Shown in pieces: positions 42,838 through 62,108 of a DNA stretch of 64,000 bases. Numbering within the stretch: the stretch's first letter is position 1; every line of letters starts with the position of its first letter. Both the position numbers and the translations under genes were made by a program. The stretch lies in sequence record NC_070962.1; one strand, given 5' to 3'. The notes under the pieces were generated by a model. It was not told the DNA's origin and ran no database searches. It saw only the letters and a program-made list of their open reading frames with translations.

Positions 42838-43053
42838 ATGACTATCACTGCTAAGTTCAAGAAGGACATCAATACCCTTCGTTCTGCTGCAAACGGTGAA
42901 ATTCTTCTAGACGTGAAGAATCCTAAACTTTTCAAAAAAGTGCGTCGTTATTATGAGAACAACGGTGTTGTGTTCTCTGGTGATCCTCTTGATGATTATG
43001 ATATTCTGATGGAATGGATTGCTAGTGATCTTGAAACTGTTGAGGTTGCTTGA
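42838..43053 (+). CDS. Conserved cyanophage hypothetical protein
   Basis: 71 aa; LDVKNPKLFKKVRRYYE. Confidence 0.7.
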   Translation: MTITAKFKKDINTLRSAANGEILLDVKNPKLFKKVRRYYENNGVVFSGDPLDDYDILMEWIASDLETVEVA

Positions 43054-43286
43054 TGAAAGTTCTTTTAGAACGTTTCCCATATCGTTATGTTGAATGTGGA
43101 ACCCTAGAAAATGGGTTTCCAGATTACCGCATTCAAAAAGCACATCATTATACTAAGAGGTACAGTGACATGTATCTCCTTGATAATCAGATGCAACTAT
43201 TGACTGCGATTGATGACTTTGAATACACTAAATGGTTAGATCCAGAACGTGTTCCTTGTTATATCAAAGACTCGGTAAGTCGTTAA
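43053..43286 (+). CDS. Conserved cyanophage hypothetical protein
   Basis: MKVLLERFPYRYVECG...DYRIQK. Confidence 0.7.
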   Translation: MKVLLERFPYRYVECGTLENGFPDYRIQKAHHYTKRYSDMYLLDNQMQLLTAIDDFEYTKWLDPERVPCYIKDSVSR

Positions 43287-43321: not shown

Positions 43322-44872
43322 ATGTTTAATCTTGGTATTCATGGATCTCATAATTCAACCTTAGTCTTGTCTTTTCAGGATGAAGTTTTGGAAGCAGTAG
43401 AAGTTGAGAGACTTATCTCTCATAAAAATGCTGCTTTATATTATTATGAGAATCCACTTCATGCTGTTAACATCGTGAGGGAAATTAATGAATACTTTAA
43501 GAAGAAATATAATTTTGAAAAATATGATGTAATTGTAATTAACTCTATGCCTGAGGATAAATTTCCTTGGGATGACGTTTTTGAATATGAAGAACTAGAG
43601 TATTGTGATCATCATGTTGCTCATGCATGTTGTGGATTTTATCAGTCACCATTTCAAGAAGCACTTGTTGTTTCTTTTGATGGTGGTTCTGATGAAGGAT
43701 TTTTTAATGCATATACGATTAAAAGGGGTGAAGATCCAGTAAAAATTTATTCTGGAGAAAAAGACTACGCAGTATCGTATATGTCTGCGGGTCATTTTAT
43801 ACGTGCTATTAAAACTGAGCAAGATATTTACAAGGGTAATCTAGTTTATCCTGGTAAATTGATGGGATATGTTGGGTATGGTGAATACAATGAGAAGTAT
43901 GCTAGGAAACTGACTGAATTTTATAAGTCTAATACCTATGATGATGTTCCAGATGCTGTCTGCAGATTCGTAAAAGAATTTAATTTTGTAGATTGGCAAG
44001 AATATTTTACTAACAGGGATGGTAAGGACATTGCTACTACAAATCAAATTGTTTTTGAGCAATTATTCCAAGAAGAAATTCAACCATTATTAGATAAGTA
44101 TCCTAATCTACCTCTAGTTCTTTCTGGTGGATGTGCATTGAATATTATTAATAATACAAAACTTGCGAGAGATCGTGAGTTGTTTGTACCACCAAATCCA
44201 AGTGATGTTGGAATTGCTTTAGGTTGTCTTCTTTATATCATTAGACCAAATCATCAAGTTGATACTACTTATATTGGTTCTCCAGTATGGGATCGTATGG
44301 ATCTTAGTAGACATTTGGTTGAGAATGTACAATCAAGAGAAACTACACCAAAAGAAGTTGCCGAAATTATTCTTTCGGGTGGAATCGTTGGTGTTGTTCG
44401 TGGGGGATCTGAGCATGGTCCTAGAGCACTTGGGAATAGAAGTCTTCTATGTGATGCAACTAATCCCAATATGAAAGATATTATGAATCTTGATGTGAAG
44501 CATAGAGAACCTTGGAGACCCTTTTCTCCAATCGTAAGACTTGAAGATGTGAGCAAGTATTTTGATTGGAGAAAGGAGTCTAGGCATATGACATTTTCTC
44601 CAGAGGTTAGACCTGAGTATCGTGAACTTTTATCATCTGTTACCCACATAGATGGAACTGCGAGAGTTCAAACAGTTACTCTAGAACAAAACGAATTTAT
44701 CTACCAGATTTTATGTCAGCTAGATAGTATGTCTGGTCATGGAGTTCTACTTAATACTTCTTTCAACGTGGCAGGTAAACCAATCTTGAACACATATAAG
44801 GAGGCATTTGAAGTCCTTGCCAAGAAACCCATATCTGGGTTGGTTCTAGAAAATTACTATTTTCCAAAATGA
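43322..44872 (+). CDS. O-carbamoyltransferase (NodU/CmcH/TobZ family)
   Basis: EVER, HHVAHA, DGG, SGGCALN, GPRALGNRS, REPWRPFSP, HIDGTARVQTV, LNTSFN. Confidence 0.9.
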   Translation: MFNLGIHGSHNSTLVLSFQDEVLEAVEVERLISHKNAALYYYENPLHAVNIVREINEYFKKKYNFEKYDVIVINSMPEDKFPWDDVFEYEELEYCDHHVAHACCGFYQSPFQEALVVSFDGGSDEGFFNAYTIKRGEDPVKIYSGEKDYAVSYMSAGHFIRAIKTEQDIYKGNLVYPGKLMGYVGYGEYNEKYARKLTEFYKSNTYDDVPDAVCRFVKEFNFVDWQEYFTNRDGKDIATTNQIVFEQLFQEEIQPLLDKYPNLPLVLSGGCALNIINNTKLARDRELFVPPNPSDVGIALGCLLYIIRPNHQVDTTYIGSPVWDRMDLSRHLVENVQSRETTPKEVAEIILSGGIVGVVRGGSEHGPRALGNRSLLCDATNPNMKDIMNLDVKHREPWRPFSPIVRLEDVSKYFDWRKESRHMTFSPEVRPEYRELLSSVTHIDGTARVQTVTLEQNEFIYQILCQLDSMSGHGVLLNTSFNVAGKPILNTYKEAFEVLAKKPISGLVLENYYFPK

Positions 44873-45216
44873 CTCACGTACAAAAACCATGGGGTTGGTA
44901 CAAAGATCTTGAAAGACATCATAATATGGTGATCAAAAAGATTTATGTTAAACCTTTTCAAAAAATCTCTCTACAAAAACATGCTCATAGAGATGAATTT
45001 TGGTATGTTCTTTCTGGTATTGGAAGTGTGCAAATTGGTAACGAACATCGATTAGCACATCAAGGAGAAACCTTTAGTATCGGTAGAGGTGAAATTCATA
45101 GGATTACCGCACATGCTGATGGTGTTACTTTCTTGGAAGTTCAGGAAGGTGAATGTAACGAAGATGATATTATCCGTTTAGAGGATGATTACAATAGAGT
45201 CACGGATGGACTGTAA
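44869..45216 (+). CDS. Mannose-6-phosphate isomerase type II C-terminal cupin
   Basis: KPWG, ISLQKHAHRDEFW, H, FLEVQEG...EDDIIRLEDDY. Confidence 0.8.
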   Translation: MTHVQKPWGWYKDLERHHNMVIKKIYVKPFQKISLQKHAHRDEFWYVLSGIGSVQIGNEHRLAHQGETFSIGRGEIHRITAHADGVTFLEVQEGECNEDDIIRLEDDYNRVTDGL

Positions 45217-45217
45217 C

Positions 45218-45290
45218 AGTACTGGTGGAGTCAATTGACCCTATTAGGTTTCTTGTTTCCTCAAAAAACAAGTGGCGAGCCTGCAAGACC
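45218..45290 (+). ncRNA. manA-RNA-like structured element (3' portion)
   Basis: CTTGTTT/AAACAAG hairpin inside an AGGTTT/GAGCCT stem, plus a GTCAATTGAC palindrome. Resemblance to the cyanophage manA motif is from memory only. Confidence 0.4.
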
Positions 45291-45292
45291 CA

Positions 45293-45315
45293 GAGGGAAT
45301 CTTTCCCTCTTTTTT
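45293..45315 (+). terminator. Rho-independent terminator
   Basis: GAGGGAA/TTCCCTC stem plus T6. Confidence 0.75.
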
Positions 45316-45350
45316 ATTCTAAATATTACATGACGTTCAATTAATCAATT

Positions 45351-45665
45351 ATGGCAACGAGAGGAACCGCAGCAAAGTCTGCAAGTGGTGCATCTATGTC
45401 AAAGTATGACGTAGAAGTTGAAGCAAGACTTCAAAAACTTGAAGCAGGAGCACATCAACATGCTGATGATGCTGTAGCAAAGGTTGAAGAAAGACTATCT
45501 GCTTTGGAAGCAAAAGCACACACACCTTGCGGTGGTGGTGGTAAAGGTGCTAAAGTAGATGCAGCAGCACTTCCAGCACTAGCACCTAGAAAGACGACTC
45601 CTCCACAAGGAAGAATCGACGCACTAGAAGCAAGAATTGAGGCACTGATTGCACAACTTTCCTGA
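45351..45665 (+). CDS. Hypothetical coiled-coil protein
   Basis: 104 aa; repeated EARL/ERL heptads. Confidence 0.65.
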   Translation: MATRGTAAKSASGASMSKYDVEVEARLQKLEAGAHQHADDAVAKVEERLSALEAKAHTPCGGGGKGAKVDAAALPALAPRKTTPPQGRIDALEARIEALIAQLS

Positions 45666-45671
45666 TGACTT

Positions 45672-46286
45672 ATGTCAATTGAATTGATTCCTTTATTTTC
45701 TGTCCCTGTTATTAAGTTTAAGTTCAGTAAGCATAATAATTACAAGTTCCCAACCATCGAGAAGCAAGAACGTATTCCCGATGGTTGGGAATTATCGCTT
45801 AATAGTTCTTATCCTTGCATCGAAGATAATGATCCATACATCTTCCCAGAAACTAGGGATTGTATAGAACGTGATCTTTTCGCAGATGTTCAGGCAGTTT
45901 TAAAACGACTGGGAGTATCTTATAAAGGTGCTTACTTTACAGACATTTGGTATAATGTTTATCATGAAGATCAAGGACAAGAACCTCATGATCATTTGCT
46001 AAATGCTGGAGAACCTAATTCTTATTGGTCTGGTATTTACTATAATTGTGGAGCATCTCCTACAAAGTTTCATAACGCACATAGATACATGAAACTTTGT
46101 ATGCCACCTGACATACATCCAGATTCACCCATTGGTGAAATGTATAATGATATGCACGATCAGGAAGTTGAAGATGGTGATGTGATTTTATTCCCACCTT
46201 GGCTAGTTCATGAAGTGGTTCCAGATAAAACTAGGACTGATATGAGATTGACATTTACATTCAACGTGGGATATAATCATGAGTGA
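45672..46286 (+). CDS. 2OG-Fe(II) oxygenase-like (HxH type)
   Basis: [34 protein letters not shown]. Confidence 0.8.
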
Positions 46287-47307
46287 TACAAAGAAAAAGA
46301 TGAAGACAGCATTAATTACTGGTATTACTGGACAAGATGGTTCATATCTTGCCGAGTTACTCCTTGAGAAAGGATATATGGTTCATGGTATTGTTCGGAG
46401 AGCATCTTTAATTAACACTGCTCGTATCGATCATATCTTTGACCATAAACGAGTTAAGTTGCATTATGGTGATCTAACTGATTCTGCCAATATTGTTCAT
46501 ATCCTTCAGCAATGTCAACCTGATGAGATTTACAATCTTGCTGCACAGAGTCATGTGAAGGTGTCTTTTGAGATGCCTGAGTACACTGGTAACGTTGATG
46601 GTCTTGGTACACTTCGTATCCTTGAGGCAGTTCGTATTCTAGGTATGGAGAAAAAGTGCCGTATCTATCAGGCATCAACATCTGAGATGTATGGTCTTGT
46701 TCAGGAGACACCTCAGACAGAAACTACACCTTTCTATCCACGTTCTCCCTATGGTTGTGCAAAGGTATACTCCTATTGGATCACAAAGAATTATCGTGAG
46801 TCCTATGGAATGTATGCTTGCACTGGTATTCTATTCAATCATGAGTCACCTCGTCGTGGTGAGACTTTTGTAACTCGTAAGATTTGTCGTGGTCTATCAC
46901 GTATTTCTGTAGGAGAGCAGAAGGTTTTGTACCTTGGAAACCTAGATGCAAAACGAGATTGGGGACATGCAAAAGACTATGTTCGTGCTATGTGGTTGAT
47001 GCTACAACAGGATGAACCTGATGATTTTGTAATTGCTACGGGTGAACAGTATTCAGTTCGTGAATTTGTAGAGAAGGTTGCTCCTTACTTCGGAATCACA
47101 ATTGAATGGCATGGTGAAGGTGATGATGAAATTGGTATGGATAAGCATACTAAGAAAACAATTATTGCCGTACATCCTAAATATTACCGACCTGCTGAAG
47201 TTGAAACTCTACTTGGTGATGCCACCAAGGCAAAAGAGAAACTTGGTTGGGAACCTGAAATTTCTTTCGATGAACTAATTGAGGACATGTGCATCTATGG
47301 ACAGTGA
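46279..47307 (+). CDS. gmd: GDP-mannose 4,6-dehydratase
   Basis: [52 protein letters not shown]. Confidence 0.97.
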
Positions 47308-48301
47308 TTCTAAAATTTACGTTGCAGGTCATAATGGACTTGTAGGATCTGCAATTGTACGAAAATTAAAAGCAGACGGGTATACTAATATCCTTAATCC
47401 CGTACATAAAGTTCCAAATCTTCTATATTATCAAGAAGTTTTTGATTTTTTTGAAGCAGAGAGACCAGACTATGTGTTCTGTGCAGCTGCTAAAGTTGGT
47501 GGAATTCTTGGAAATAAGAACTATAAGGCAGATATCATCTGGGAAAACTTGATGATTCAGACTAATCTTATTGAATGTTCTTGGGATTGGAATGTTAAAA
47601 AACTTGTATTTTTAGGATCATCTTGCATTTATCCAAAACATGCACAGATTCCTATTAAAGAAGATGCGTTAATGACTGGTCCACTTGAACCAACTAATGA
47701 TGCATATGCTGTCGCAAAGATTGCTGGTATCAAGATGTGTCAGTCCTATCATGAACAACATGGGTTTAATGGTATTAGTCTGATGCCATGCAATTTATAT
47801 GGTCCAGGTGATAATTTTCATCCAGAAAAGTCACATGTTCTTCCTGGATTGATTCATAGATTTCATGAAGCAAAAGAGCAAAATCTACCTACAGTAACAT
47901 GCTGGGGTGATGGTTCACCACTTCGTGAGTTTCTTCACGTAGATGATCTTGCTGATGCTTGTGTTTATTTGATGAATAATTATGATGATCCGCAACAAAT
48001 TATTAATGTTGGATCTGGAACCGAAGTATCGATTAGAGAGTTGGCAGAGACTATTGCAGATGTTGTTGGATATAAGGGTCTTATTATGTGGGATACTGAA
48101 AAACCAAATGGCACTATGCGTAAAGTTATGGATGTTTCCAGAATCAAAGCAACTGGATGGGAACCAAAGATTGGTCTTCGTGAAGGAATTCAAATGACCT
48201 ATGATTGGTATATTGAAAAGCAAGGTGTAATTCGAGGCATCGATGATATTGAAGATGAGGTGAATGAGATTCTTAAAAAGAGTAATTGTAGTGGGTGTTG
48301 A
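47297..48301 (+). CDS. fcl: GDP-L-fucose synthase
   Basis: [56 protein letters not shown]. Confidence 0.95.
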
Positions 48302-48304
48302 TAA

Positions 48305-49294
48305 ATGAAAACAGCATTAGTATGTGGAGCAGGTGGATTCATTGGAAGTCACATGGTTCGTCGTCTCAAGAAAGAAGGGTATTGGGTTCGTGGTGTTGAT
48401 CTAAAGTATCCAGAGTTTTCGGAAACAGAAGCAGATGAGTTTATCATTGGTGATTTAACTGATGATGCGTTGGCATTGAATGTTTGTAATCGTTCTTTTG
48501 ATGAGATCTATCAGTTTGCTGCCGACATGGGTGGTGCAGGATATCTCTTTACAGGTGAGAACGATGCAAACATTATGCATAATTCTGTTCAGATTAATCT
48601 GAATGTTCTAAGAGCAGCATCAATTACTTCAATCGACACTACGAAAATTTTCTATTCATCTTCTGCCTGTGTTTATTCAGAACTCAACCAGGAGGATGTA
48701 GATCATATTGATACTTCAGAGGCAAGTGTATATCCTGCACTTCCAGATTCTGAGTATGGTTGGGAGAAACTATTCAGTGAGAGACTTTATTTTGCATTTG
48801 CAAAGCAGTATGGTCTAGACGTAAAGGTTGCTCGTTATCACAATGTATTCGGTCCTGAGGGAACTTGGACTGGTGGTAAGGAGAAAGTACCTGCTGCTAT
48901 GTGCCGCAAGGTTGCAGAGGTTTCTGATGTTGGTGGTCATGTAGAAGTCTGGGGTGATGGTGAACAAACTAGATCTTTCCTATTCATTGATGAATGTATT
49001 GAAGCAACCTATCGTTTGATGCAATCAGATTGGAGTGGTCCAGTGAATATTGGATCTGAGGAAATGGTATCTATTAATGAACTAGTAGACATTGTTGCTG
49101 AAGTTGCTGGCAAACCTGTGCGTCGAGTTCATAAGATTGATGCCAACTGTATTGGTGTAAAGGCACGTAACTCTAATAATGATTTGATCCGTAAGATGCT
49201 AGAATGGGACTATACAATGTCCTTGAAAGAAGGTATTGAAATTACCTATAATTGGATTAATCAGCAAGTTAAGGAGAGTGTTTCATGTTCCTAG
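48305..49294 (+). CDS. NAD-dependent epimerase, GDP-mannose 3,5-epimerase-like
   Basis: GAGGFIGSH, FAADMGG, YSSSACVY, YGWEKL, RYHNVFGP..TW.GGKEK.PAA.CRK, WGDG.QTRSF. Confidence 0.8.
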   Translation: MKTALVCGAGGFIGSHMVRRLKKEGYWVRGVDLKYPEFSETEADEFIIGDLTDDALALNVCNRSFDEIYQFAADMGGAGYLFTGENDANIMHNSVQINLNVLRAASITSIDTTKIFYSSSACVYSELNQEDVDHIDTSEASVYPALPDSEYGWEKLFSERLYFAFAKQYGLDVKVARYHNVFGPEGTWTGGKEKVPAAMCRKVAEVSDVGGHVEVWGDGEQTRSFLFIDECIEATYRLMQSDWSGPVNIGSEEMVSINELVDIVAEVAGKPVRRVHKIDANCIGVKARNSNNDLIRKMLEWDYTMSLKEGIEITYNWINQQVKESVSCS

Positions 49295-50136
49295 TAGCAA
49301 CTACAAGATCAGTCTTATATGTACGTGAAGACAATGTAATCACTCCTGTGGATCGTGGTAAAGGTCTTTACTATGGTCTAGCAAAAAGTTTCGGTAAGTA
49401 TTATGTTGCTTGTCGCAATAGTGATCCAACTCATACGAATAAATTTATTCCTCCCGAAGAAGAGTCTGGGGATATTATTGTATTAGATAATAAACTACGA
49501 GCAGAAACTATTCTGCAACCAGAAGATTTTAAACTGCAAGATCTTCATGGCATTGGATTCTGGTCTGGTAAACTTCTTTGCACATCAAGTTATGGTGATT
49601 ACATTGCAATCTATGATGGTGAGAAGTGGGATCGTTGGCAACCAATTCCACCAAGACGTAACTGCAGTTACCGAGATAGTCATCACCTAAACACTGTTTA
49701 CGGAACTGATAATCGTTTATATATCCTTGCACATAATTGGGATAACGGTAGTTATATTCTTGAGTTTGATGGTATTGGTCAACCACCAAGACAGATTCAT
49801 AGTAATATGGGTATCCAGTGCCATGATCTTTGGTCACATAAAGGTGATATCTACACTCTGAGTTCTAAGGAAGGATGCGTAAGGTCTACTGGTGGTTTTG
49901 TAAAAGATCTTGGTGGATGGGTACGTGGTTTTGCTCACGTAGACAATCACTTCTGGGTTGGTGTTTCACCCACGGCAAAGAGAAGTGATCGTGCATTTGG
50001 TGATGGCATCATCCGTAAGTACGATGAGGACTGGAATCAAGTTGGTGAACTTATTCTAGAAGACGAAGGACAAGTCCTAGCAATTCTTGACATTGGACGC
50101 AAAGCATCAAATCCACAACTCTCAATGTTATCATGA
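49285..50136 (+). CDS. Hypothetical protein, probable beta-propeller
   Basis: Repeated short beta-hairpin blades (HLNTV, HDLW, RGF). Confidence 0.55.
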   Translation: MFLVATTRSVLYVREDNVITPVDRGKGLYYGLAKSFGKYYVACRNSDPTHTNKFIPPEEESGDIIVLDNKLRAETILQPEDFKLQDLHGIGFWSGKLLCTSSYGDYIAIYDGEKWDRWQPIPPRRNCSYRDSHHLNTVYGTDNRLYILAHNWDNGSYILEFDGIGQPPRQIHSNMGIQCHDLWSHKGDIYTLSSKEGCVRSTGGFVKDLGGWVRGFAHVDNHFWVGVSPTAKRSDRAFGDGIIRKYDEDWNQVGELILEDEGQVLAILDIGRKASNPQLSMLS

Positions 50137-51002
50137 AGATTTATATTTGGGGTCACAAACTCCACGAACATACTCATAGTTACATTCATGCCTCATATTA
50201 CAAGGCATTTGAATATCTAGGACACGAAGTTTATTGGATTGACTCAAGAGATGATTTGAGTCAATATGACTTTAGTGATTCTGTATTCTTTACAGAAAAC
50301 TTTGTAAAGGGTGGAATGCCTCTTCGTAAGGATTGTAAGTACATTACTCACCACATTGATACTAAGTATCTAACTGATGCTGGTGTTCCTTACGAAAATG
50401 TTTTGAAGTTGGGGAACTATCTACCAAGTCTAGAGGTTCATGAGAAGGTAGATCATCTAGCATATTGGGATCAATCTACTCGTACTCTTTATCAAACTTG
50501 GGGAACAGATCTACTACCTCATGAAATTGATGAGGATAATCCTGCTAAGTTCAGTCACAGTAATAAGTTTCTGAATTATATTGGGATGATGTATGAGCAA
50601 GGACCCTGGTGGGCACAATCATTTGCAGATATCCTTTGGGAAAAGAAAAATGTTGTGTTTAAAGTCTTCACACAGAATGCATCATTTGAAGAAAACCTAG
50701 AACTGATCAGGTCATCTTATCTTTGCCCTGATTTTAGAAGTGATTGGCACTTGCAATGTGGATACATTCCGTGTAGAATATTTAAGAATATCAGTTATGG
50801 TAGAGTAACTGGAACTAATTCACCATTTGTAAAACGTGCATTCGGTGATTATGTTGCATACGGTGGAACACCAGACACCCTGCTTTCAAATCTATTAGAA
50901 GCAGATGCTGGTGGAGATATTGATATTAGAGAGGCAATGCTTTTCGTCAAAGAAAATCATACATTCATTAACAGAGTAAATACTATCCTGAAGTTCTTAT
51001 GA
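50133..51002 (+). CDS. Putative glycosyltransferase (GT-B-like)
   Basis: YIPCRIFKNISYG, HTFINRVN at the C-terminus; cluster context. Confidence 0.55.
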   Translation: MKIYIWGHKLHEHTHSYIHASYYKAFEYLGHEVYWIDSRDDLSQYDFSDSVFFTENFVKGGMPLRKDCKYITHHIDTKYLTDAGVPYENVLKLGNYLPSLEVHEKVDHLAYWDQSTRTLYQTWGTDLLPHEIDEDNPAKFSHSNKFLNYIGMMYEQGPWWAQSFADILWEKKNVVFKVFTQNASFEENLELIRSSYLCPDFRSDWHLQCGYIPCRIFKNISYGRVTGTNSPFVKRAFGDYVAYGGTPDTLLSNLLEADAGGDIDIREAMLFVKENHTFINRVNTILKFL

Positions 51003-51787
51003 TCGGTTTTAATCATCTAGGTCAACATGGAAGACTTGGTAATCAAATGTTTCAATATGCTGCATTACGTGGTATTGCTGCAGCACGTGGATATGACTTC
51101 GCAATTCCTCAATCTAATTTTGAAGATGAGTGGAAAGATCATCAACTTTTTGAAACTTTTAAACTACCACATAATAAAAATCGTGGGTATCAACTACAAC
51201 CACAATACTATCAAGAGAAGCAATTTCACTATGATCAGACATATGTAGATAATTGTCCAGATCAAGTATGTCTATTTGGTTATTTTCAAACAGAACGGTA
51301 CTTTGAGCACATTGCTGATAGTATTCGTGAAGACTTTACTTTTAAAGATCATATTGTAGAAACTTGCCAAGGTTTTATTGATCAAGTAAACAATCCTATC
51401 GCACTCCATGTTCGTAGGACTGATTATGTTACTAAATCAAAGGATCATCCACCTTGCAGTCTTGAGTATTATCAAGAAGCACTATCTAAGTTTGATGAAG
51501 ACCGTGATGTAATTGTATTCTCGGATGATCCTGAGTGGTGTAAGCAGCAAGAATTATTTGAATCTGATCGATTTATGGTTGCTGAAGGTAATGATAATCG
51601 TTATGATATGTGTCTGATCTCAATGTGTGATGACTTTATTATTGCAAACTCATCTTTTTCATGGTGGGGTGCCTGGTTGGCAAATCGTGGAACTGTGATT
51701 GCACCTTCTCAATGGTTTGGTGATGATGGGTACACTTCTAAGAATGATACCCGTGATATAGTACCTGATAGGTGGACAAGACTATGA
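50999..51787 (+). CDS. Alpha-1,2-fucosyltransferase (GT11)
   Basis: GRLGNQMFQYA, GYFQ, HVRRTDY, FSDD, IIANSSFSWWGAWL. Confidence 0.9.
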   Translation: MIGFNHLGQHGRLGNQMFQYAALRGIAAARGYDFAIPQSNFEDEWKDHQLFETFKLPHNKNRGYQLQPQYYQEKQFHYDQTYVDNCPDQVCLFGYFQTERYFEHIADSIREDFTFKDHIVETCQGFIDQVNNPIALHVRRTDYVTKSKDHPPCSLEYYQEALSKFDEDRDVIVFSDDPEWCKQQELFESDRFMVAEGNDNRYDMCLISMCDDFIIANSSFSWWGAWLANRGTVIAPSQWFGDDGYTSKNDTRDIVPDRWTRL

Positions 51788-52536
51788 TTGACTTATCAAT
51801 TGCTATTCCTACATATGAAATGGGAGGAGTTGGTCCTGACTATCTTAGGGAACTCTTTGCCAGTATTGAGAAGCAAACTTTTAAGAACTTTGAGGTTTGC
51901 ATCTCAGACCATTCTAAAGATGATTCTACTCTAGAAGTATGTGAAGAGTATTCTCAAGATTTTACTATTCAATATTTCAAGAATGTAGAGGATCGTGGTA
52001 ATGGACCAGCTAACACAAACTCAGCAGTTGAGATGTGTTCTGGTCAATATACTAAACTAATTTTCTCTGATGATTTATTCATCAATGATAATGCTTTTGA
52101 ATTAATTGTTAGGACCTTTGATGCTACTGATTGTGATTGGTTGTTCAATGGTTTCAAACATACTTCTGATGGGAGAAACTTTGTAAGACCAATGGTTCCT
52201 CGTTGGACTGATATGATGTTGGAGGGTAGAAACCTCCTTGGTTCTCCTTCTTGTGTTGCCTTTAAGACTGATAAATTTGTGGGATTTGATTCTAAACTAA
52301 AACTACTGATGGATACCGATTTCTATCATCGGATGCGTTGTGAGAATGGTGCTCCTGGATTGATTGAAGATTATCTTATTGCTAATCGTGAGCATCCGAA
52401 TAGAATTAGTTCTGCCAACGTTGATTACAACTATAGGTTTGATCATCCAGAAGGATCTTGGATTGTAAATAAGGAAGAACTTGATTACGTTCTAGAGAAA
52501 AACAAAAACAATACATACCAAAATGAGAAAGATTGA
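51784..52536 (+). CDS. GT2-family glycosyltransferase
   Basis: SIAIPTY, VCISDHS, N.GPAANTN, FSDD, DTDF. Confidence 0.85.
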   Translation: MIDLSIAIPTYEMGGVGPDYLRELFASIEKQTFKNFEVCISDHSKDDSTLEVCEEYSQDFTIQYFKNVEDRGNGPANTNSAVEMCSGQYTKLIFSDDLFINDNAFELIVRTFDATDCDWLFNGFKHTSDGRNFVRPMVPRWTDMMLEGRNLLGSPSCVAFKTDKFVGFDSKLKLLMDTDFYHRMRCENGAPGLIEDYLIANREHPNRISSANVDYNYRFDHPEGSWIVNKEELDYVLEKNKNNTYQNEKD

Positions 52537-53362
52537 TCTATCTAATGCAACTTTTATCGTCCCTATCAGATTAGAATCTGCGGATCGATTGCGAAATGTA
52601 ATTACAAGTTTGTGTTATATTCTTGCAAACTTCAAAACAAACGTAATAGTTCATGAAGTTGATTCCGAGTCTGTGTTTGCAGAAAGTGCTCTGCCACAGA
52701 TTACGGAATTTCTTGATGGAGATGTAGAAGGTCTTAAGCATATTTTTGAAGAATCTGATTCACCATCGTTTCATAGACAGAGAGTTCTCAATGATATGGT
52801 TATGATGTCAACTACTAAAGTAGTTGTTAATTATGATTGTGATATTATTCTTCCTAAGGAGACATATCAACATGCATATGAGATTATTAATAATGATCAT
52901 GCAGATGTAATCTATCCATATGGTGATGGTAATTGGCAGTATCAAGTCTTTGCTGATGATGAATTAGTTACGGAATTCCTCACTAATGAGTTTGATATTA
53001 AAATTCTAAATAAGAAGTCGAAAGTCTACATGTCCAAATATGGATTTTGTCAGTTCTTCAATAGAGATATCTACATTGAAGGTGGACTAGAGAATGAAAA
53101 CTTCGTAGCATATGCTCCAGAAGATGTAGAAAGATATCATAGGTTTACAACTCTTGGTTATAGAGTTGGCAGAGTTCCTGATTGGGTGTATCATTTGGAA
53201 CATGCCAGAACTCCAAATTCATGGGTCAACAATCCACATATGCAAAAGAATACTGCAGAGTGGGAAAAGATACAGAAAATGCAACCTAATGAATTGAGAG
53301 AGTATATCGATAGTCAAGAGTATTATCAAAAAAGGTTATGTCAAACACAACAATCGCAGTAG
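52523..53362 (+). CDS. GT-A glycosyltransferase (GT2/GT7-like)
   Basis: NYDCD (DxD), GGLENENFVAYAPEDVE, YHLEH. Confidence 0.75.
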   Translation: MRKIDLSNATFIVPIRLESADRLRNVITSLCYILANFKTNVIVHEVDSESVFAESALPQITEFLDGDVEGLKHIFEESDSPSFHRQRVLNDMVMMSTTKVVVNYDCDIILPKETYQHAYEIINNDHADVIYPYGDGNWQYQVFADDELVTEFLTNEFDIKILNKKSKVYMSKYGFCQFFNRDIYIEGGLENENFVAYAPEDVERYHRFTTLGYRVGRVPDWVYHLEHARTPNSWVNNPHMQKNTAEWEKIQKMQPNELREYIDSQEYYQKRLCQTQQSQ

Positions 53363-54030
53363 TTACTTCGTCTATTGGAACGAATGATTTAATTGCACCA
53401 GAGAAATGGTTGGATAAAGTTGACTATCATGCTTTTGTAGAACCACACAAAATATCAATTAGTGATATGTGGCATCGACATGAGTATGTTAGTTTTTCAC
53501 TAGATCCAAAATATAAGAATAGAAGGGACGCAAAAATCTATAAAGTCTGTCCACATTTATTTCTTCCTGGATATGACTATTATATTTGGATGGACTCTAC
53601 ACATATTTTAGAAGCAGATCCAGAAGAAATGATTGAAGAACATTTGAAAGGATCTGATATTGCAGTCTTCAAACATCCAGAGAGAGATTGTATCTATGAG
53701 GAAGGAAATCTAGTAAAACAAATTGGATTTGATCATGCTAACTTAGTAGAAGATCAACTTGACTTCTATCGGGAGATGGAGTATCCTGAACATAATGGTT
53801 TATATGAACTTCCTGTAAGAATTCAAAAGAATAATGGTCGAACACAGCAACTTGGTTTGATGTGGTGGGAACAGATTTGTATGTTCTCATCTAGAGACCA
53901 GATTAGTTTTCCTTTTGTTTGTAGTCATTTGGGAATTAAACCAAACATTATTCCTGGGAGAGCAAATACCATCCGAGGAAACAAATATATACCACAAGTT
54001 GTAAGTTCTCATCACAGTCGAGTTGGATAA
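53338..54030 (+). CDS. DUF616/MUCI70-like glycosyltransferase
   Basis: KIYKVCPH, IWMDS, HPERDCIYEE, RDQISFPF. Confidence 0.75.
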   Translation: MSNTTIAVVTSSIGTNDLIAPEKWLDKVDYHAFVEPHKISISDMWHRHEYVSFSLDPKYKNRRDAKIYKVCPHLFLPGYDYYIWMDSTHILEADPEEMIEEHLKGSDIAVFKHPERDCIYEEGNLVKQIGFDHANLVEDQLDFYREMEYPEHNGLYELPVRIQKNNGRTQQLGLMWWEQICMFSSRDQISFPFVCSHLGIKPNIIPGRANTIRGNKYIPQVVSSHHSRVG

Positions 54031-55352
54031 TGTGTAGTTTTCTTTTCACAGATTTGGATGTAAATGATTTTGAATATACAAATCATTACATGAGGTTTCG
54101 TGGTCCTGATGCCACAAATAGTATTCAGGTCAATGAGTATACAATTGCTCATAACATTCTCTCCATTACTGGAGACTTTACACCACAACCATTTGTAGAT
54201 CATGAAGATGAAATCGTTTGCGTATATAATGGACAAATCTATAATTATTCTGATTTTGGTGAGTACAAGTCTGATGGTGAGTGTATAATTCCAACTTATA
54301 AAAAATTTGGTGAACGTGCATTTATTACATTGGATGGTGAGTTTGCTATTGTACTAGCAGATTTTAAGAATAACCTTTTACATCTAGTTACAGACCCTTT
54401 TGCAACAAAACCATTATGGTATGGTATCAATGGTGGTAAGATTGCTGTAGCAAGTTATGAATCTGCTGTTAAGTCTTTAGGAATTAAAGCAACTAAGTTA
54501 GAAGCAAATACTATTCTAACTCTTGAACTAGATTCAAAGGCACATGTGAATTCTATTAGAACATATGATTTTGTTCTACATCAATTCAGTGAGTCATTTG
54601 ATGGATGGATTAAAGCATTTGAAGAATCTGTTCGTAAGAGAACCCGTGGTATTCGTGAGAAAGTATTCATTGGATTGTCCAGTGGATATGACAGTGGTGG
54701 AATTGCTTGTGAACTGAATAAGCAGAACGTACCTTACAAAGCATATACGGTTGTTGGTAATGAACAACAGGATGTACTTCGTAAGAGGTATGAGATGTTT
54801 AATGAGAACTCCTGTGGTGTTTATCTACAGGACAATCGTTGGGCATATAAAGAGTATATCAATAAGAATGTAGAAGAGTTTAAGTATCGTATCTACTCTT
54901 CTAGTAGTGATTACAATGAGTTTAATACTAGACTGCAGGATGACAATGGATCTTGTGGTCTTTCTATGATTTGTGATAATGCTCGCAAAGAAGGACATAA
55001 GATCTATCTCTCAGGATCTGGGTCAGATGAAATCTTCTCTGACTATGGATTTAATGGTGAGAAGAAGTTTTTGCATAGTAATTTTGGTGGTCTGTTCCCT
55101 GAAGATCTGGAAACTATATTCCCTTGGGCTTCATTTTATGGCAGTACTATGGTATCATATCTTGCGAAGGAAGAGTATGTTGCTGGTTCCTATGGTATAG
55201 AAACACGTTATCCATACTTGGATAAATACGTCGTTCAAGAATTCTTGTCACTGACACATACACTAAAGAATTCAAAGTATAAGTCTGTGCTTGATGAGTA
55301 TCTGACTAGATCAAACTATCCATTTGAAAAAAATATTAAGAGAGGTTTTTGA
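54030..55352 (+). CDS. Asparagine synthetase-like glutamine amidotransferase
   Basis: N-terminal Cys2, RGPD, YNGQIYN, LDGEFAI, LSSGYDS, LSGSGSDEIF, ETRYPYLD. Confidence 0.8.
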   Translation: MCSFLFTDLDVNDFEYTNHYMRFRGPDATNSIQVNEYTIAHNILSITGDFTPQPFVDHEDEIVCVYNGQIYNYSDFGEYKSDGECIIPTYKKFGERAFITLDGEFAIVLADFKNNLLHLVTDPFATKPLWYGINGGKIAVASYESAVKSLGIKATKLEANTILTLELDSKAHVNSIRTYDFVLHQFSESFDGWIKAFEESVRKRTRGIREKVFIGLSSGYDSGGIACELNKQNVPYKAYTVVGNEQQDVLRKRYEMFNENSCGVYLQDNRWAYKEYINKNVEEFKYRIYSSSSDYNEFNTRLQDDNGSCGLSMICDNARKEGHKIYLSGSGSDEIFSDYGFNGEKKFLHSNFGGLFPEDLETIFPWASFYGSTMVSYLAKEEYVAGSYGIETRYPYLDKYVVQEFLSLTHTLKNSKYKSVLDEYLTRSNYPFEKNIKRGF

Positions 55353-55897
55353 TGTCGTCCACATTATCTAAAGAAGTTCTTCTAAAGCATAAGAAGAACA
55401 ATGTATTTGTAGAAACAGGAACACTTTGGGGTGATGGAGTCGCAGTTGCTCTAGAGTGTGGTTACGATAAGGTGATCAGTATTGAGATTGATCCTGATCG
55501 TGTCGCAGCAAACTCTGAAAGGTTTGCTGAGGAGATTGCAGAGGGTCGTGTGGAATTGGTTGAGGGTGACACCTTTGATGTCTTTGAGGGCATTGTAGAG
55601 GGTCTAGAGGAACCAGCAACGTTCTGGTTAGATGCTCACTGGGATAATGATGGAGCACCAATCGGTGAGTATAAGTGCCCACTTCCATTTGAACTTGATA
55701 CGATTGCAAAGAGTGACATCAGAACTCATACTTTGATGATTGATGATCGTAGACTATTTGGTGATCAAGGAAGCACTTGGGGTAATACTATTGATGAGAG
55801 TGCAATCTATGAGCAGGTGACTGCTATCAACAAGTCTTACTTCATTTCTTATGAAGATGGTCATGTAGAGAATGATGTTATTGTTGCCTCTTGCTAA
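55352..55897 (+). CDS. SAM-dependent methyltransferase-like protein
   Basis: FVETGT..G, SIEID, FWLDAHW, LMIDD. Confidence 0.65.
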   Translation: MSSTLSKEVLLKHKKNNVFVETGTLWGDGVAVALECGYDKVISIEIDPDRVAANSERFAEEIAEGRVELVEGDTFDVFEGIVEGLEEPATFWLDAHWDNDGAPIGEYKCPLPFELDTIAKSDIRTHTLMIDDRRLFGDQGSTWGNTIDESAIYEQVTAINKSYFISYEDGHVENDVIVASC

Positions 55898-55899
55898 TT

Positions 55900-56700
55900 A
55901 TGAATTACAATGTTTTTACTACGGCTAATAAGTCGTACTTTCCTTTTGTCGATGTGCTTGTAAATTCTCTAACCGAGAATTGTCCAAACCTCAATAGAAT
56001 TTATATTGCAGACTGTGGTCTAGGTGAATACCGTAAGTATCTTCAGGATAAAGACAATGTGTGTATTATGGACACAGATGTCACTGATGAATATGCTGGT
56101 GTTCATTCTGAAGGTTGGGTAAAGGCAACTCAACAGAAGACTAGAGTTCTGAGCAAACTTCTGACCATGATGGATTTTGAAGACCCACTCATTATGATTG
56201 ATAGTGATGTGTGCGTTCTAGAAGATCTGGCACAGGTCATTGATAAGGAGTTTGATATGCAAGTGACTACAATGAATACTGGTGGTCATACCCGTGCTGA
56301 TGGAATCTTTATCAGTGAGATTGCAAGTTTCTTGGTTATCAATAACAGTAGTCTCGGTAAGGTTTTTGTCCGCAATTGGATCAAGCAGATGGAAGAGTTT
56401 GCTGAGAATGGTACTCCATTCCCTCACGAAACTCCTGCACTAAATATGATTTTGCAGAATAACACCTTCCTTAATATTGGTTATCTGAAAGAATTGGAAG
56501 TTTGTGCAGATCAAGAATTAACATCAAGAACTTTATCAGTACACTTTAAGAGCAATGGTTCCACAAAGGACAATCCTGTGGTAAACTTTGAGAATAGAGT
56601 GATGTCTGTTGATAATAAAACAGAGACTGACCTTGATATTGACAAATACTTGAATGAAGAAATGTACGATCAATGGAGATCTGAATATGAAACTAACTGA
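55900..56700 (+). CDS. Nucleotide-diphospho-sugar transferase (GT-A, GT77-like)
   Basis: KT.VL..LL, IMIDSDV (DxD), ETPALN, VHFK. Confidence 0.65.
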   Translation: MNYNVFTTANKSYFPFVDVLVNSLTENCPNLNRIYIADCGLGEYRKYLQDKDNVCIMDTDVTDEYAGVHSEGWVKATQQKTRVLSKLLTMMDFEDPLIMIDSDVCVLEDLAQVIDKEFDMQVTTMNTGGHTRADGIFISEIASFLVINNSSLGKVFVRNWIKQMEEFAENGTPFPHETPALNMILQNNTFLNIGYLKELEVCADQELTSRTLSVHFKSNGSTKDNPVVNFENRVMSVDNKTETDLDIDKYLNEEMYDQWRSEYETN

Positions 56701-57274
56701 TATTCATACACAATTTAAGACTGATAAGGGAACTGCCCACGATTATATCGGTTGGTATGAGCAGACATTCTCTGATCGTAGAACTGATGAGATGAATGTT
56801 CTTGAGATTGGTGTTCTTTTTGGTGGTTCACTCAAGATGTGGGAGCACTACTTTGAGAACTCTAACATATATGGTGTAGAAGACTTTTCTCAAGAAGATG
56901 GTCAATGGCATTATCAGTATGAACCAGTAGATGGTGATGCTGTGATGGAAGATGTGAATAGTCATGAACGGATTACTCTGTTTAACTTTGATTGTGAAAA
57001 TCTAAATCACATTCAGGAGCACTTTGGTGATCTAACATTTGATATTATCCTTGACGATGCCAATCATAAGTTGTCTCAGCAAATGAAAAATGCTGAGAAT
57101 TATATGCCATATCTTCGTGATGGTGGTATTTACATTTGTGAGGATGTGCAAACTGCTCAGGGTGCAAAAGAACTCTGCGAATTTATTACTGAGTTGTATC
57201 CTGGAGCACAAACACATATCATTGAATGTGATCTAAACAAGAAATCAGACGATAGGTTAGTAGTAGTCGTATGA
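56687..57274 (+). CDS. Class I SAM-dependent methyltransferase
   Basis: TDKG, VLEIGVLFGGSLKMW, FDIILDD, GGIYICEDV. Confidence 0.8.
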   Translation: MKLTDIHTQFKTDKGTAHDYIGWYEQTFSDRRTDEMNVLEIGVLFGGSLKMWEHYFENSNIYGVEDFSQEDGQWHYQYEPVDGDAVMEDVNSHERITLFNFDCENLNHIQEHFGDLTFDIILDDANHKLSQQMKNAENYMPYLRDGGIYICEDVQTAQGAKELCEFITELYPGAQTHIIECDLNKKSDDRLVVVV

Positions 57275-58062
57275 GAACTTTAAACATCTATTGTGACGGT
57301 GGATTCGGAAACCGTTATGGAACTTTGCTTGGTGGACTTGCCGTAGCAAACTACCATAAGATGCGTCCAGTTGTTGTCTGGAGAGACACTTCTGCATGTC
57401 GTTTACCATTTCATGAAATCTTTACGTCTGATATAGATGTCGTTGATCAACCACTACAGGATTTTTCTGGTAGTGTTCTTTTGATGCATGAAGATTTTAT
57501 TCAAGGAGTTAAAAATTATAATATTAACTCCTTTGGATCTATCGATGACCTTCCAGTGTCTAACTGTGGATCATATGTTTATAATAACAATTGGATTCCT
57601 GAGTGGTTGGATGAGCATCTTGTGATTGAAGTAGGAAGGCAGTTGAAGTTTGTTGATAAAATTAAGAACTTCTGCGATCAATACTGTAAGAAACATTCCA
57701 TAACACCATTTGCTATTGGTATTCATTTGAGAGCAACAGATTTCAATACTTTTATTCCTAAGTTTGATAGGGAATATAAATGGATTGAAGGACAACCAGA
57801 AGAAAAGTTTTTTGTCCTATCTGATGATCCAAATGTAGAAAAGAAATTTAGCAAACTTAAAAATGTAATTGTTCGTATGAAAGAACATTACGTTGAAAAG
57901 GAAAATAAGGATGCTGGTTGGTGTGGAAATGTAGAAAGAAGTTCCGAAAGTGTTATGGATGCACTTATCGACTTGACAATTCTTTCTAAAACAAATATTA
58001 TGGTTAACTCACCCAGTTCATTTTTGAAAACTGCTCTGTTATTACGCAAGATTAATGGATAA
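57271..58062 (+). CDS. Fucosyltransferase-like GT-B (GT11/NodZ-type motifs)
   Basis: GGFGNR, GIHLRATD, FVLSDD, DL.ILSK, SSF. Confidence 0.65.
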   Translation: MRTLNIYCDGGFGNRYGTLLGGLAVANYHKMRPVVVWRDTSACRLPFHEIFTSDIDVVDQPLQDFSGSVLLMHEDFIQGVKNYNINSFGSIDDLPVSNCGSYVYNNNWIPEWLDEHLVIEVGRQLKFVDKIKNFCDQYCKKHSITPFAIGIHLRATDFNTFIPKFDREYKWIEGQPEEKFFVLSDDPNVEKKFSKLKNVIVRMKEHYVEKENKDAGWCGNVERSSESVMDALIDLTILSKTNIMVNSPSSFLKTALLLRKING

Positions 58063-58840
58063 AAATAAATCAACATTCAAACTTCAAGGTTTTGGTCCTA
58101 TCTATTATCTCAATCTCGATGGTCAACCAGAGAGACGAGAGTATATGGAGGACCAATTTAAGTATTGGGAGATTGAAAACTATGAAAGGATCTCTGCTTA
58201 TGATGGCAGAGACGATGATCTGAGTGACATCCTCAAGGGTCGTTATCCTGAGAGGATGACTCCTGGTGAGATTGGATGTGTTACGTCACACCTGAAAGCA
58301 ATCAGGCATTGGTTGGACACTTCCGATTCACCTTATGCAGTCTTCATGGAAGATGATTGTAGTCTTGATCTTGTAAGGTTCTGGCCATTTACTTGGAGAG
58401 ACTTTTATTCTCGTCTTCCTTATGATTGGGACTGTGTACAGATTTCTATTATCTGTACGGGTGATATTCATGTCAGACTTCACAAACGTTTTGTTAATGA
58501 TTTCTCGACAGCATGTTATATTATGAATCGTCGGTATGCTGAGAAACTCATGCATTTCCACGTCAAGGGTGCCGACAAATATAAACTTGACAATGGTGTG
58601 AAACCACGTCCAGTTGCGGACGATCTTCTGTATAATGCAGGGAATACTTATGCAATTCCTTTGCTTCTATACAGGACTGAGTTGGGTTCTTCTATTCATC
58701 CAGAACACGTGGATGTATTCCATAAGCAGAACTATCAATCTCAGTGGAACTTCTGGGAGACTTCTGGATCCAAGATGAGTCTTGCGGACATCGTGAACTA
58801 CGATCCATATCTGGGTCGAGTCACGGAACCAACACCTTAG
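58055..58840 (+). CDS. GT25-family glycosyltransferase
   Basis: YYLNLD...ERR, ISAYDG, GEIGCVTSHL, FMEDD, STACY. Confidence 0.85.
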   Translation: MDKNKSTFKLQGFGPIYYLNLDGQPERREYMEDQFKYWEIENYERISAYDGRDDDLSDILKGRYPERMTPGEIGCVTSHLKAIRHWLDTSDSPYAVFMEDDCSLDLVRFWPFTWRDFYSRLPYDWDCVQISIICTGDIHVRLHKRFVNDFSTACYIMNRRYAEKLMHFHVKGADKYKLDNGVKPRPVADDLLYNAGNTYAIPLLLYRTELGSSIHPEHVDVFHKQNYQSQWNFWETSGSKMSLADIVNYDPYLGRVTEPTP

Positions 58841-58842
58841 GG

Positions 58843-58871
58843 TTGACAGAACTTTACATTTCCTATATAAT
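58843..58871 (+). promoter_or_regulatory. Sigma70 promoter of hli, with possible HLR1-like repeat
   Basis: TTGACA-N17-TATAAT; TTGACAGA-AC-TTTACATT direct repeat. Confidence 0.75.
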
Positions 58872-58897
58872 TATGTTGTAAATCTTTACATAAGGAA

Positions 58898-59116
58898 ATG
58901 ACTGTTACTACAAACGAGCATGGCCAACAGAATATGTTTGCCAAAGAACCACAAATGTATGTTGACAAAACGACAGCAGAACGTTATGGTTATGAGACTT
59001 ATGCTGAGAAAGCAGAAAAACTCAATGGACGTACTGCTATGCTAGGATTTGTAGCAGCAGTTATTTCCTATGCTACTTCTGGTAGTCTCTTCTTCTTTGG
59101 TATCTTCGGATTCTGA
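58898..59116 (+). CDS. hli: High-light-inducible protein
   Basis: AEKLNGRTAMLGFV. Confidence 0.95.
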   Translation: MTVTTNEHGQQNMFAKEPQMYVDKTTAERYGYETYAEKAEKLNGRTAMLGFVAAVISYATSGSLFFFGIFGF

Positions 59117-62058: not shown

Positions 62059-62075
62059 TCACTTAATGTGAATTT

Positions 62076-62105
62076 AAGGATCTCCTAACGGAGATCCTTT
62101 TTTTA
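62076..62105 (+). terminator. Rho-independent terminator
   Basis: AAGGATCTCC-TAAC-GGAGATCCTT plus T tract. Confidence 0.8.
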
Positions 62106-62108
62106 TGG

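Follow-up and report, generated by a model that had tools for sequence, protein, structure and literature searches.

What does a virus of marine picocyanobacteria make with two dozen glycan-related genes, and to what is the product attached? The question is raised by Synechococcus phage S-SCSM1 (MK867354.2 / NC_070962.1), a T4-like cyanomyovirus (Kyanoviridae) whose genome measures 228,827 bp; a stretch of 64,000 nucleotides of it (the window) was analysed here. Between 40.2 and 58.8 kb of the window, 24 mostly overlapping genes on the + strand (open reading frames ORF112-135) form an island predicted to make, transfer and modify sugars. The answer favoured here, tentatively and with a chance put slightly below even, is that the glycan is assembled in the cytoplasm on a lipid-linked envelope glycan of the host and exported by the host. 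Window positions equal record positions minus 62000, and record 106000-121000 of MK867354.2 is window 44000-59000 at 100% identity. T4-like cyanophages kill marine picocyanobacteria, which perform a large share of ocean photosynthesis, and the surface-glycan genes of these phages have been an open question since 2005.

The island is already known. The S-SCSM1 genome and its glycan gene set were published by Wang et al. 2022 (PMC9602691), and cyanophage "lipopolysaccharide (LPS) gene clusters" of this kind have been known since 2005 from P-SSM2, S-SM2 and S-SSM7 (Sullivan et al. 2005, 2010; PMC3037559, PMC2984593). Such clusters lie near hli03, and their co-occurring genes include GT11 (T4-GC 260), nucleotide-sugar epimerase (T4-GC 265) and GT25-like (T4-GC 266) families (Sullivan et al. 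2010, PMC3037559). An envelope-glycan role has been proposed for them (PMC2984593, PMC3037559, PMC9602691). An earlier note on this DNA, made from the letters alone, held both product and target to be uncharacterised, which stands for the product, while the genes themselves are published. No new kind of system is described here; the additions are a conserved core with a recurrent pairing of two of its genes, the status of S-SCSM1 as an expanded allele, purifying selection, promoters, and a link between a beta-propeller family and Wzt exporters or chain-terminating methyltransferases of O-polysaccharide systems.

Composition of the glycan island

The island begins with ORF112, ORF113, ORF114, tRNA-Met, ORF115, ORF116, ORF117, ORF118 and a wcaG-like RNA with a terminator. 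It continues with ORF119, ORF120, Gmd, Fcl, GME, ORF124, ORF125, GT11, GT2 and ORF128, and ends with ORF129 (TOD1/MUCI70), the AsnB-like ORF130, ORF131, ORF132, the Methyltransf_24 protein ORF133, ORF134 and GT25. Intergenic spacing over 45672-58840 is -25 to +6 nucleotides (nt), which bears out the contiguity reported before, and the clustering is far beyond chance. Membrane-like segments are found in none of the 24 products (maximum 19-residue hydropathy 1.66), all of which are acidic (isoelectric point 4.2-6.2) except ORF119 (7.9). Downstream of GT25 lie hli and then petF, a layout shared with P-SSM2.

Four proteins are predicted to act on the mannose pool. ORF118 (44869-45216) is a monofunctional type II mannose-6-phosphate isomerase (MPI) cupin of 115 residues (PF01050, E 1.1e-23; PMC9602691). 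ORF121 (46279-47307) matches GDP-mannose 4,6-dehydratase (Gmd; PF16363, E 6.8e-159), and ORF122 (47297-48301) matches GDP-L-fucose synthase (Fcl/WcaG; NF047922, E 1.1e-136) with 455 bits, slightly short of the equivalog cutoff (500); with both of them found, the route to GDP-L-fucose appears to be present. To judge by its sequence, ORF123 (48305-49294) is a real GDP-mannose 3,5-epimerase (GME), aligned to the Arabidopsis enzyme 2c59 over residues 6-324 (E 6.3e-82) and clearly above other short-chain dehydrogenase/reductase (SDR) epimerases (next family 4e-22).

Nine soluble glycosyltransferases (GTs) are predicted. Three belong to the fucosyltransferase superfamily: the GDP-fucose O-fucosyltransferase-family protein ORF113 (40789-41928; PF10250, E 1.2e-15; POFUT2 8ay1, E 7e-9), the GT11 protein ORF126 of the alpha-1,2-fucosyltransferase family (50999-51787; PF01531, E 1.5e-31), and the small ORF134 (57271-58062; PF10250, E 1.4e-4). 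PF10250 is matched by 16 of 24 members of the ORF134 family, the best at E 1e-10, and POFUT1 at E 0.01. The others are the GT2 protein ORF127 (51784-52536; PF00535, E 4e-16), the GT-A-like ORF128 (52523-53362; weak GT2 match, PF00535, E 0.005; phrog_15655, E 1.2e-120), the GT25 protein ORF135 at the 3' end of the island (58055-58840; PF01755, E 4.1e-11), the GT77-like nucleotide-sugar transferase ORF132 (55900-56700), the TOD1/MUCI70-type (formerly DUF616) putative GT ORF129 (53338-54030; PF04765, E 6.1e-17) and the compact GT-B protein ORF125 (50133-51002). ORF132 has no direct Pfam match, and many relatives at 40-85% identity carry PF03407. ORF125 has 1389 relatives and belongs to no Pfam family; its GT-B fold comes from an AlphaFold2 (AF2) model (mean predicted local distance difference test, pLDDT, 84; GT-B matches E 3e-5). 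Its best PDB fold matches include GT-Bs extending protein-linked glycans, and among viral proteins it matches best one domain of a multidomain GT25 protein from a giant virus (Hokovirus, E 6e-11); the giant-virus proteins matching this fold also carry GT25 or methyltransferase domains. PDB sequence searches with ORF124, ORF125, ORF128, ORF131 and ORF134 gave nothing useful.

The tailoring set comprises one carbamoyltransferase, one AsnB-like amidotransferase and at least one methyltransferase, perhaps two. ORF117 (43322-44872) is of the NodU/CmcH O-carbamoyltransferase type (PF16861, E 1.8e-55; PF02543, E 2.1e-18). ORF130 (54030-55352), which begins Met-Cys, combines GATase_7 (E 4.9e-17) and Asn_synthase (E 9.4e-12) matches and resembles AsnB structures (E 3e-10). 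ORF133 (56687-57274) is a Methyltransf_24 S-adenosylmethionine (SAM) methyltransferase (PF13578, E 4.5e-6), and ORF131 (55352-55897) is probably another SAM methyltransferase (weak matches: NCBIfam RsmA region, E 4.8e-4; hhalign against Methyltransf_24, E 0.0017, probability 16%). ORF129 directly precedes ORF130, and plant members of the TOD1/MUCI70 family are uronosyl-transferases; amidation of a uronic acid can reasonably be inferred from this adjacency. Three proteins are 2-oxoglutarate (2OG) oxygenases: the prolyl-4-hydroxylase-like 2OG-Fe(II) enzyme ORF112 (40203-40787, start per GenBank; PF13640, E 2.6e-17), ORF114 (41925-42620), so labelled in GenBank and of uncertain family (phrog_2954, E 1.6e-10; no Pfam match), and the 2OG-Fe(II) enzyme ORF120 (45672-46286; PF13759, E 4.4e-11), which overlaps the start of Gmd by 8 nt. 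The class is not clearly enriched, at 3 of 24 island genes against a published count of 24 among about 280 coding sequences (CDS) genome-wide. ORF119 (45351-45665) is a small Ala/Glu/Lys-rich protein of unknown function (phrog_35121, E 2.5e-22), and ORF115 and ORF116 (42838-43286) are two small conserved proteins without Pfam match.

Every enzyme family that the earlier note had listed is thus found by Pfam, NCBIfam or fold evidence, in a different order and with some labels corrected, including the carbamoyltransferase and the O-fucosyltransferase that it had placed upstream. Its view of a coherent phage operon that builds and decorates a glycan, equipped to make GDP-L-fucose and with several GTs of the fucosyltransferase superfamily and transferases for methyl, carbamoyl and amido groups, also holds. 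The 2OG oxygenases, ORF119, the wcaG RNA with its terminator and the promoters were absent from it.

Conserved core and expanded allele

GT11 is widespread in phages, with at least 600 matches among IMG/VR viral contigs and 105 records of isolated or assembled phages. Of these records, 91 are named cyanophages; GT11-bearing phages include S-SM2, S-T4, Bellamy, P-TIM68, S-SSM7, P-SSM2, P-SSM5, ACG-2014f and S-CAM7/9. When 29 GT11 loci with full flanks, all outside the S-SCSM1-like group, were compared, ORF128 and GT25 were present in all 29, GT2 in 22, a GME-like gene in 20, an ORF133-like methyltransferase in 10 and a TOD1-like gene in 3. True Gmd/Fcl genes, the AsnB-like gene, the GT77-like gene, ORF134 and the carbamoyltransferase each occurred in none of the 29. 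These counts make GT11, ORF128 and GT25, with or without GT2 and GME, the ancestral core. From this comparison of sequences, S-SCSM1 appears as an expanded allele of the hypervariable glycan ("LPS") island of cyanomyoviruses, which is always placed just upstream of the hli/petF genes. The expansion consists of the ORF129-134 block between ORF128 and GT25, of Gmd/Fcl, of ORF124, of the carbamoyltransferase-MPI pair and of the 2OG/O-fucosyltransferase/2OG module.

Twelve loci (L002-L012 and L031; about ten uncultured S-SCSM1-like contigs) have the S-SCSM1-specific genes in the same order, with some modules lacking. ORF113 homologues are confined to S-SCSM1-like contigs, and ORF124 has only ten relatives in IMG/VR, at 84-94% identity. 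The sugar-nucleotide module varies even among close relatives, L011 having only Gmd and L009 having Gmd and Fcl but no GME. In comparison with three relatives, the ratio of non-synonymous to synonymous substitution (dN/dS) is 0.04-0.29 for each gene that has a full-length counterpart; all island genes compared are under purifying selection. L005 and L011 show one apparent in-frame stop each within the aligned stretch (in the ORF128 and ORF127 homologues, respectively); both are metagenomic contigs.

Several other alleles were noted. That of Sf-FS3 (L177, 186730-203581) holds three GT11 paralogues, UDP-glucose 6-dehydrogenase, a NadE-like synthetase with a CN-hydrolase, a sugar O-methyltransferase, a prolyl-4-hydroxylase-like oxygenase and GT25. 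In an uncultured 258-kb relative (L014), an array of about 25 tRNAs lies upstream of the island (1-4800), and a group I intron (19333-19535, 80.7 bits) adjoins a PhotoRC-II RNA, presumably in psbA.

The phage GT11 proteins share 55-67% identity with one another and at most 53% with cellular proteins. The best cellular matches (53%, 51% and 45%) all come from metagenome-assembled genomes (MAGs) or single-cell assemblies, and the rest are at 40% or less. A recent host origin was considered and rejected, no marine picocyanobacterium being among the 80 best cellular loci. Cellular relatives usually lie near SDR sugar-nucleotide genes in polysaccharide-type neighbourhoods, with true Gmd/Fcl orthologues (50-70% identity) at about 20 of the 80 loci; in MAG L095 a GME gene (48%) is directly upstream of GT11 (53%), a phage-like pairing. 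L-fucose is 6-deoxy-L-galactose, and together with the recurrent GME-GT11 pairing this suggests that the donor of the core GT11 may be GDP-L-galactose, to which S-SCSM1 would add an L-fucose option. To go by the pairing, the ancestral donor may have been L-galactose instead of L-fucose.

The beta-propeller family and dependence on the host

ORF124 (49285-50136) is predicted to be a six-bladed beta-propeller (AF2 pLDDT 92.9; YWTD/NHL-type propellers in Foldseek), for which the GenBank label "coatomer subunit alpha" is over-specific. It is a stand-alone propeller, without fused Wzt, methyltransferase or sulfotransferase domain, and a full HMMER search found 385 representative relatives. Among ten long relatives scanned, two are Wzt proteins (ABC_tran and Wzt_C) with a C-terminal propeller, three combine the propeller with a SAM methyltransferase and one with a sulfotransferase, and four are without further Pfam match. 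One of the Wzt-propeller fusions adjoins Wzm, a methyltransferase-GT1 protein and KpsS/C-like genes. One propeller-methyltransferase locus is ordered Wzm, Wzt, propeller-methyltransferase and a triple-GT4 polymerase; the slot between Wzt and the GT4 polymerase is the one that we take to be the chain-terminator (WbdD) position of Escherichia coli O9a-type loci. These contexts tie the ORF124 family, at the level of sequence, to O-polysaccharide export and chain-end modification.

Phage genes for several other steps of such a pathway were not found. The genome annotation read covers about four fifths of the S-SCSM1 record, record 50-62 kb and 226-229 kb lying outside it. No gene is annotated there as ManB (phosphomannomutase), ManC (GDP-mannose pyrophosphorylase), a UDP-sugar enzyme, a priming transferase, a flippase, an ABC exporter, a polymerase or a ligase. 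In a hydropathy scan of about 212 of the 229 kb, PsbA and PsbD are the sole annotated genes with several transmembrane-like segments, in line with the earlier statement that no flippase, polymerase or ligase is visible; the scan otherwise flagged an unannotated antisense frame and a large virion protein in which three segments are scattered. The pathway had also been called self-sufficient, and here the description fails: of the enzymes of GDP-mannose supply, only the MPI cupin is present. Since ManB/ManC, a priming enzyme and an exporter are lacking, GDP-mannose and other donors must come from the host, and the acceptor must already be available, either in the cytoplasm or on the membrane's inner face.

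Acceptor of the glycan

On the favoured reading of a host lipid-linked envelope glycan, MPI would convert fructose-6-phosphate to mannose-6-phosphate, Gmd and Fcl would convert GDP-mannose to GDP-L-fucose, and GME would turn GDP-mannose into GDP-L-galactose or GDP-L-gulose. During the latent period of 15-18 h, an L-fucose/L-galactose oligosaccharide, methylated, carbamoylated and probably bearing a uronamide, would be assembled at the cytoplasmic face. With no priming enzyme, ManB/ManC or exporter of the phage's own, the acceptor would be supplied by the host, as lipid A-core (an extension of lipooligosaccharide, LOS, type) or as an undecaprenyl-linked polysaccharide of the ABC-transporter-dependent type. 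Export by host MsbA/Lpt or Wzm/Wzt would then alter the surface of the infected cell. A plausible benefit is that neither other phages nor the phage's own progeny would adsorb any longer to infected cells and debris, or that grazers would cease to recognise them.

Several observations speak for this reading. The ORF124 family occurs in Wzt/Wzm and chain-terminator contexts, and GT25 is described in Pfam as an LPS-biosynthesis family. LOS-type extension needs only soluble GTs, and the finished lipid A-core is flipped via the general MsbA/Lpt route, which would explain the absence of a dedicated exporter. Envelope-polysaccharide chemistry is found in other alleles, that of Sf-FS3 having Ugd together with an amidotransferase pair and that of S-SCSM2R, as published, having KdsA/KdsB and PgaA; the long latent period leaves time for export. 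Other points weigh against it. The acceptor is wholly inferred, and in the literature on cyanophage glycan islands no experiment on any gene-to-product step was found. The phage GT11 clade is not host-derived, which fits a function of the phage's own. S-SCSM1 infects many Synechococcus and Prochlorococcus clades with varying surface glycans, so a host acceptor would need to be common to them all. Structurally, ORF125 has its closest viral relatives in domains of the giant-virus multidomain GT25/methyltransferase proteins, and giant viruses of that type glycosylate their own virions. Finally, a slow-growing host renews only part of its envelope per latent period.

Some of these points lead to a different acceptor, a virion or other phage protein, on which the soluble GTs would decorate capsid, fibre or other proteins to give a variable glycan coat. 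Chloroviruses, mimiviruses and some mycobacteriophages glycosylate their own virion proteins in the cytoplasm. All island enzymes are soluble and export machinery is absent; three of the GTs are of the protein-O-fucosyltransferase superfamily; the core genes constitute a clade specific to phages and retained in those that infect different hosts, an independence that a phage-encoded acceptor would explain; and the fold of ORF125 matches the giant-virus domains as well as GT-Bs that extend protein glycans in the cytoplasm. A late-promoter-like box lies ahead of ORF119, and 2OG-Fe(II) oxygenase genes occur between baseplate-wedge genes (MK867354.2 20510-21061) and directly upstream of tail-fibre genes (210680-213294), hydroxylation of S-SCSM1 structural proteins being conceivable. 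Against this, the island lies among metabolic rather than structural genes, its module promoters are host-type, and the propeller family points toward lipid-linked polysaccharide systems. Nor does the published account of 45 S-SCSM1 virion proteins name any island protein or report glycosylation (PMC9602691). A collagen-like (hydroxylysine) acceptor for GT25 was also sought, and no Gly-X-Y run of at least 8 triplets was found in 212 kb of the genome. Virion glycosylation is regarded as a minority prospect, though one of real weight. Its boldest form is a shade more doubtful: that T4-like cyanophages have an autonomous cytoplasmic system that coats their own virions with a hypervariable methylated L-galactose/L-fucose glycan, under control of a sugar-nucleotide-sensing wcaG RNA (an orphan riboswitch candidate), a marine-phage equivalent of the virion glycosylation of chloroviruses and mycobacteriophages that a considerable fraction of oceanic cyanomyoviruses would possess.

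A soluble product outside the envelope is improbable, whether an oligosaccharide, free or bound to a small molecule, or a redirection of GDP-mannose that deprives host glycan synthesis of it. It would accord with MPI, Gmd, Fcl and GME all drawing on the mannose pool, with a Nudix protein annotated as GDP-mannose glycosyl hydrolase, and with the published treatment of MPI as a carbon-metabolism gene (PMC9602691); but a metabolic sink needs far fewer enzymes than the nine GTs and the four tailoring enzymes, which are under purifying selection, and the GT core is kept even without Gmd and Fcl. DNA, which the earlier note had listed among its candidate targets and which has been raised for a related phage (PMC12801897), is a very poor candidate. 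Glycosylation of modified phage bases against restriction is brought to mind by the GenBank label "DNA beta-glucosyltransferase" for ORF125 and by the 2OG oxygenases nearby. The label is over-specific, however: generic GT-Bs fit ORF125 better, and T4 alpha-glucosyltransferase (AGT) ranks 20th (E 0.01). TET/JBP-type DNA oxidation by ORF112 was likewise rejected (Tet_JBP 15.6 bits, cutoff 34.9). Thymidylate synthase and dCMP deaminase are annotated, whereas no hydroxymethylase is in the annotation read, and we know of no DNA modification by GDP-fucose chemistry with nine GTs. That the island is non-functional "stuffer" DNA filling the capsid (Sullivan et al. 2010, PMC3037559) is hardly credible. 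It is found mainly in larger genomes, as this idea would have it; yet the dN/dS values given above argue against it, synteny is kept, the core recurs across the 80 GT11 loci examined, and perfect promoters are present.

The host lipid-linked envelope glycan remains the favoured acceptor. If the surface of infected cells is remodelled, superinfection, adsorption of progeny to debris and grazing would be affected; if virions are glycosylated, the view of marine phage decay, host range and recognition would change. S-SCSM1 is cultured on the standard host WH7803 and has the richest allele among those compared, which makes it a good system for the study of glycan chemistry.

Promoters and the wcaG RNA

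Perfect TTGACA-N16-18-TATAAT sites occur eight times in the window, all on the + strand (21849, 25332, 37628, 38878, 40055, 46248, 58843 and 63583), against 0.07 expected. Four of them directly precede tRNA-Ala, Arg, Gly and Pro. Putative host-type (sigma-70) promoters of perfect match precede island modules: one (40055-40083, +, 12/12) lies ahead of tRNA-Pro and the ORF112-114 module and another (46248-46277, +) immediately before Gmd, while a third (58843-58871, +) belongs to the downstream hli gene and marks the 3' boundary. The -10 box of the Gmd promoter ends 2 nt ahead of the annotated ATG (46279), so its transcripts would need the Met eight codons downstream (46300).

A diverged wcaG RNA (RF01761; 45200-45286, +), annotated before in S-SCSM1 (PMC9602691), scores 37.2 bits (E 4e-5), below the gathering score of 42; in five relatives, the copies at the corresponding position reach 46-92 bits. 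In L021, L023 and L057 it lies 85-430 nt upstream of the GME gene, and the RNA is therefore taken as a leader of sugar-nucleotide genes. It is a published riboswitch candidate without known ligand (PMC2864571). In the same three loci, homologues of ORF115/ORF116 precede both RNA and GME, and in many phages this pair delimits the island on its 5' side. After the wcaG RNA come, in the window as in L009, L011 and L021, an intrinsic terminator (a GC hairpin with a T-run) and then a conserved late-promoter-like CTAAATA box (45292-45325, +).

The published late promoter of cyanomyoviruses is NATAAATA (PMC2984593). The T4 late-promoter octamer TATAAATA has no copy at 30.2-61.5 kb; ahead of ORF119 there is only a CTAAATA box. 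CTAAATA is found upstream of 7 structural genes of S-SCSM1, and the 60-nt stretches upstream of its 45 structural genes hold 24 [A/C]TAAATA boxes, ahead of 22 of them; taken overall, CTAAATA shows no enrichment, with 10 copies found against 12.4 expected. An early together with a late-like promoter is the pattern described for "middle" genes (PMC2984593), and timing therefore does not discriminate between the targets.

Comparison with known systems

The closest likeness is to the cyanophage LPS clusters of P-SSM2, S-SM2 and S-SSM7, which also lie directly upstream of hli/petF and near tRNAs and share with S-SCSM1 the core of GT11, nucleotide-sugar epimerase and GT25-like genes and a mixture of genes for GT2, methyltransferases and 2OG oxygenases; in P-SSM2 the corresponding island, at the same place, measures about 12 kb. 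To these S-SCSM1 adds Gmd/Fcl, the MPI-carbamoyltransferase pair, the O-fucosyltransferase/2OG module, the propeller and the insert between ORF128 and GT25. The E. coli O9a-type locus comprises Wzm/Wzt, the WbdD terminator and the WbdA polymerase. ABC-dependent O-polysaccharide loci, like GT25 extension of LOS, use soluble or peripheral GTs at the cytoplasmic face, as S-SCSM1 would. Enzymes of GDP-sugar supply and methyl capping are common to these loci and the island, and the ORF124 family is there fused to Wzt or to the methyltransferase in terminator position, whereas Wzm/Wzt, a priming transferase and a ligase are not on S-SCSM1 in the 212 kb scanned. The colanic-acid block of E. coli runs gmd, fcl/wcaG, gmm/wcaH, manC, manB. 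S-SCSM1 also has gmd followed by fcl, and a Nudix GDP-mannose hydrolase (a weak assignment) elsewhere in the window; it differs in having no annotated manB or manC and in adding GME and a stand-alone MPI cupin.

Virion glycosylation in PBCV-1, mimiviruses and mycobacteriophages resembles the island in its own GDP-sugar enzymes, soluble GTs and methyltransferases, and in the recurrence of the ORF125 fold in giant-virus multidomain GT25/methyltransferase proteins. The GT genes of S-SCSM1, in contrast, are not beside structural genes, and no cyanophage virion glycoprotein is known. As to T4-type DNA glucosylation, a hydroxymethylase is absent from the annotation read and AGT is a distant match of ORF125. 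The earlier note had drawn a parallel to Nod-factor tailoring, which does not go beyond generic families: Gmd, Fcl, a NodU-type carbamoyltransferase, methyltransferases and a sulfotransferase about 43 kb away are shared, but the island has no NodA, NodB or NodC Pfam matches, and its only GT2 is a soluble protein of 250 residues. The GenBank label "fucosyltransferase NodZ" for ORF134 was rejected as well, its profile matching NodZ 2hhc at E 0.54; its family matches PF10250 and no NodZ model, so that it is a PF10250-superfamily GT instead. What the two have in common is a set of tools and not a system.

Neighbouring loci

Three genes that lie 31-43 kb upstream of the island may take part in its chemistry: a sulfotransferase (1201-2046; PF13469, E 7.5e-22), another Methyltransf_24 protein (4537-5175) and the Nudix protein annotated as GDP-mannose glycosyl hydrolase (9339-9857; weak, PF00293, E 1.6e-4). 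Downstream, after the hli/petF block, lie pstS and two cyanophage outer-membrane beta-barrel genes (61687-62615; the second PF24653, E 7e-38), with a TATAAATA box at 61572. A second sugar-related locus beside phoH (MK867354.2 148182-152801; L178 22182-26801) contains four carbamoyl transferase CDS, two short and two long, which look like two split genes, followed by a dTDP-glucose 4,6-dehydratase.

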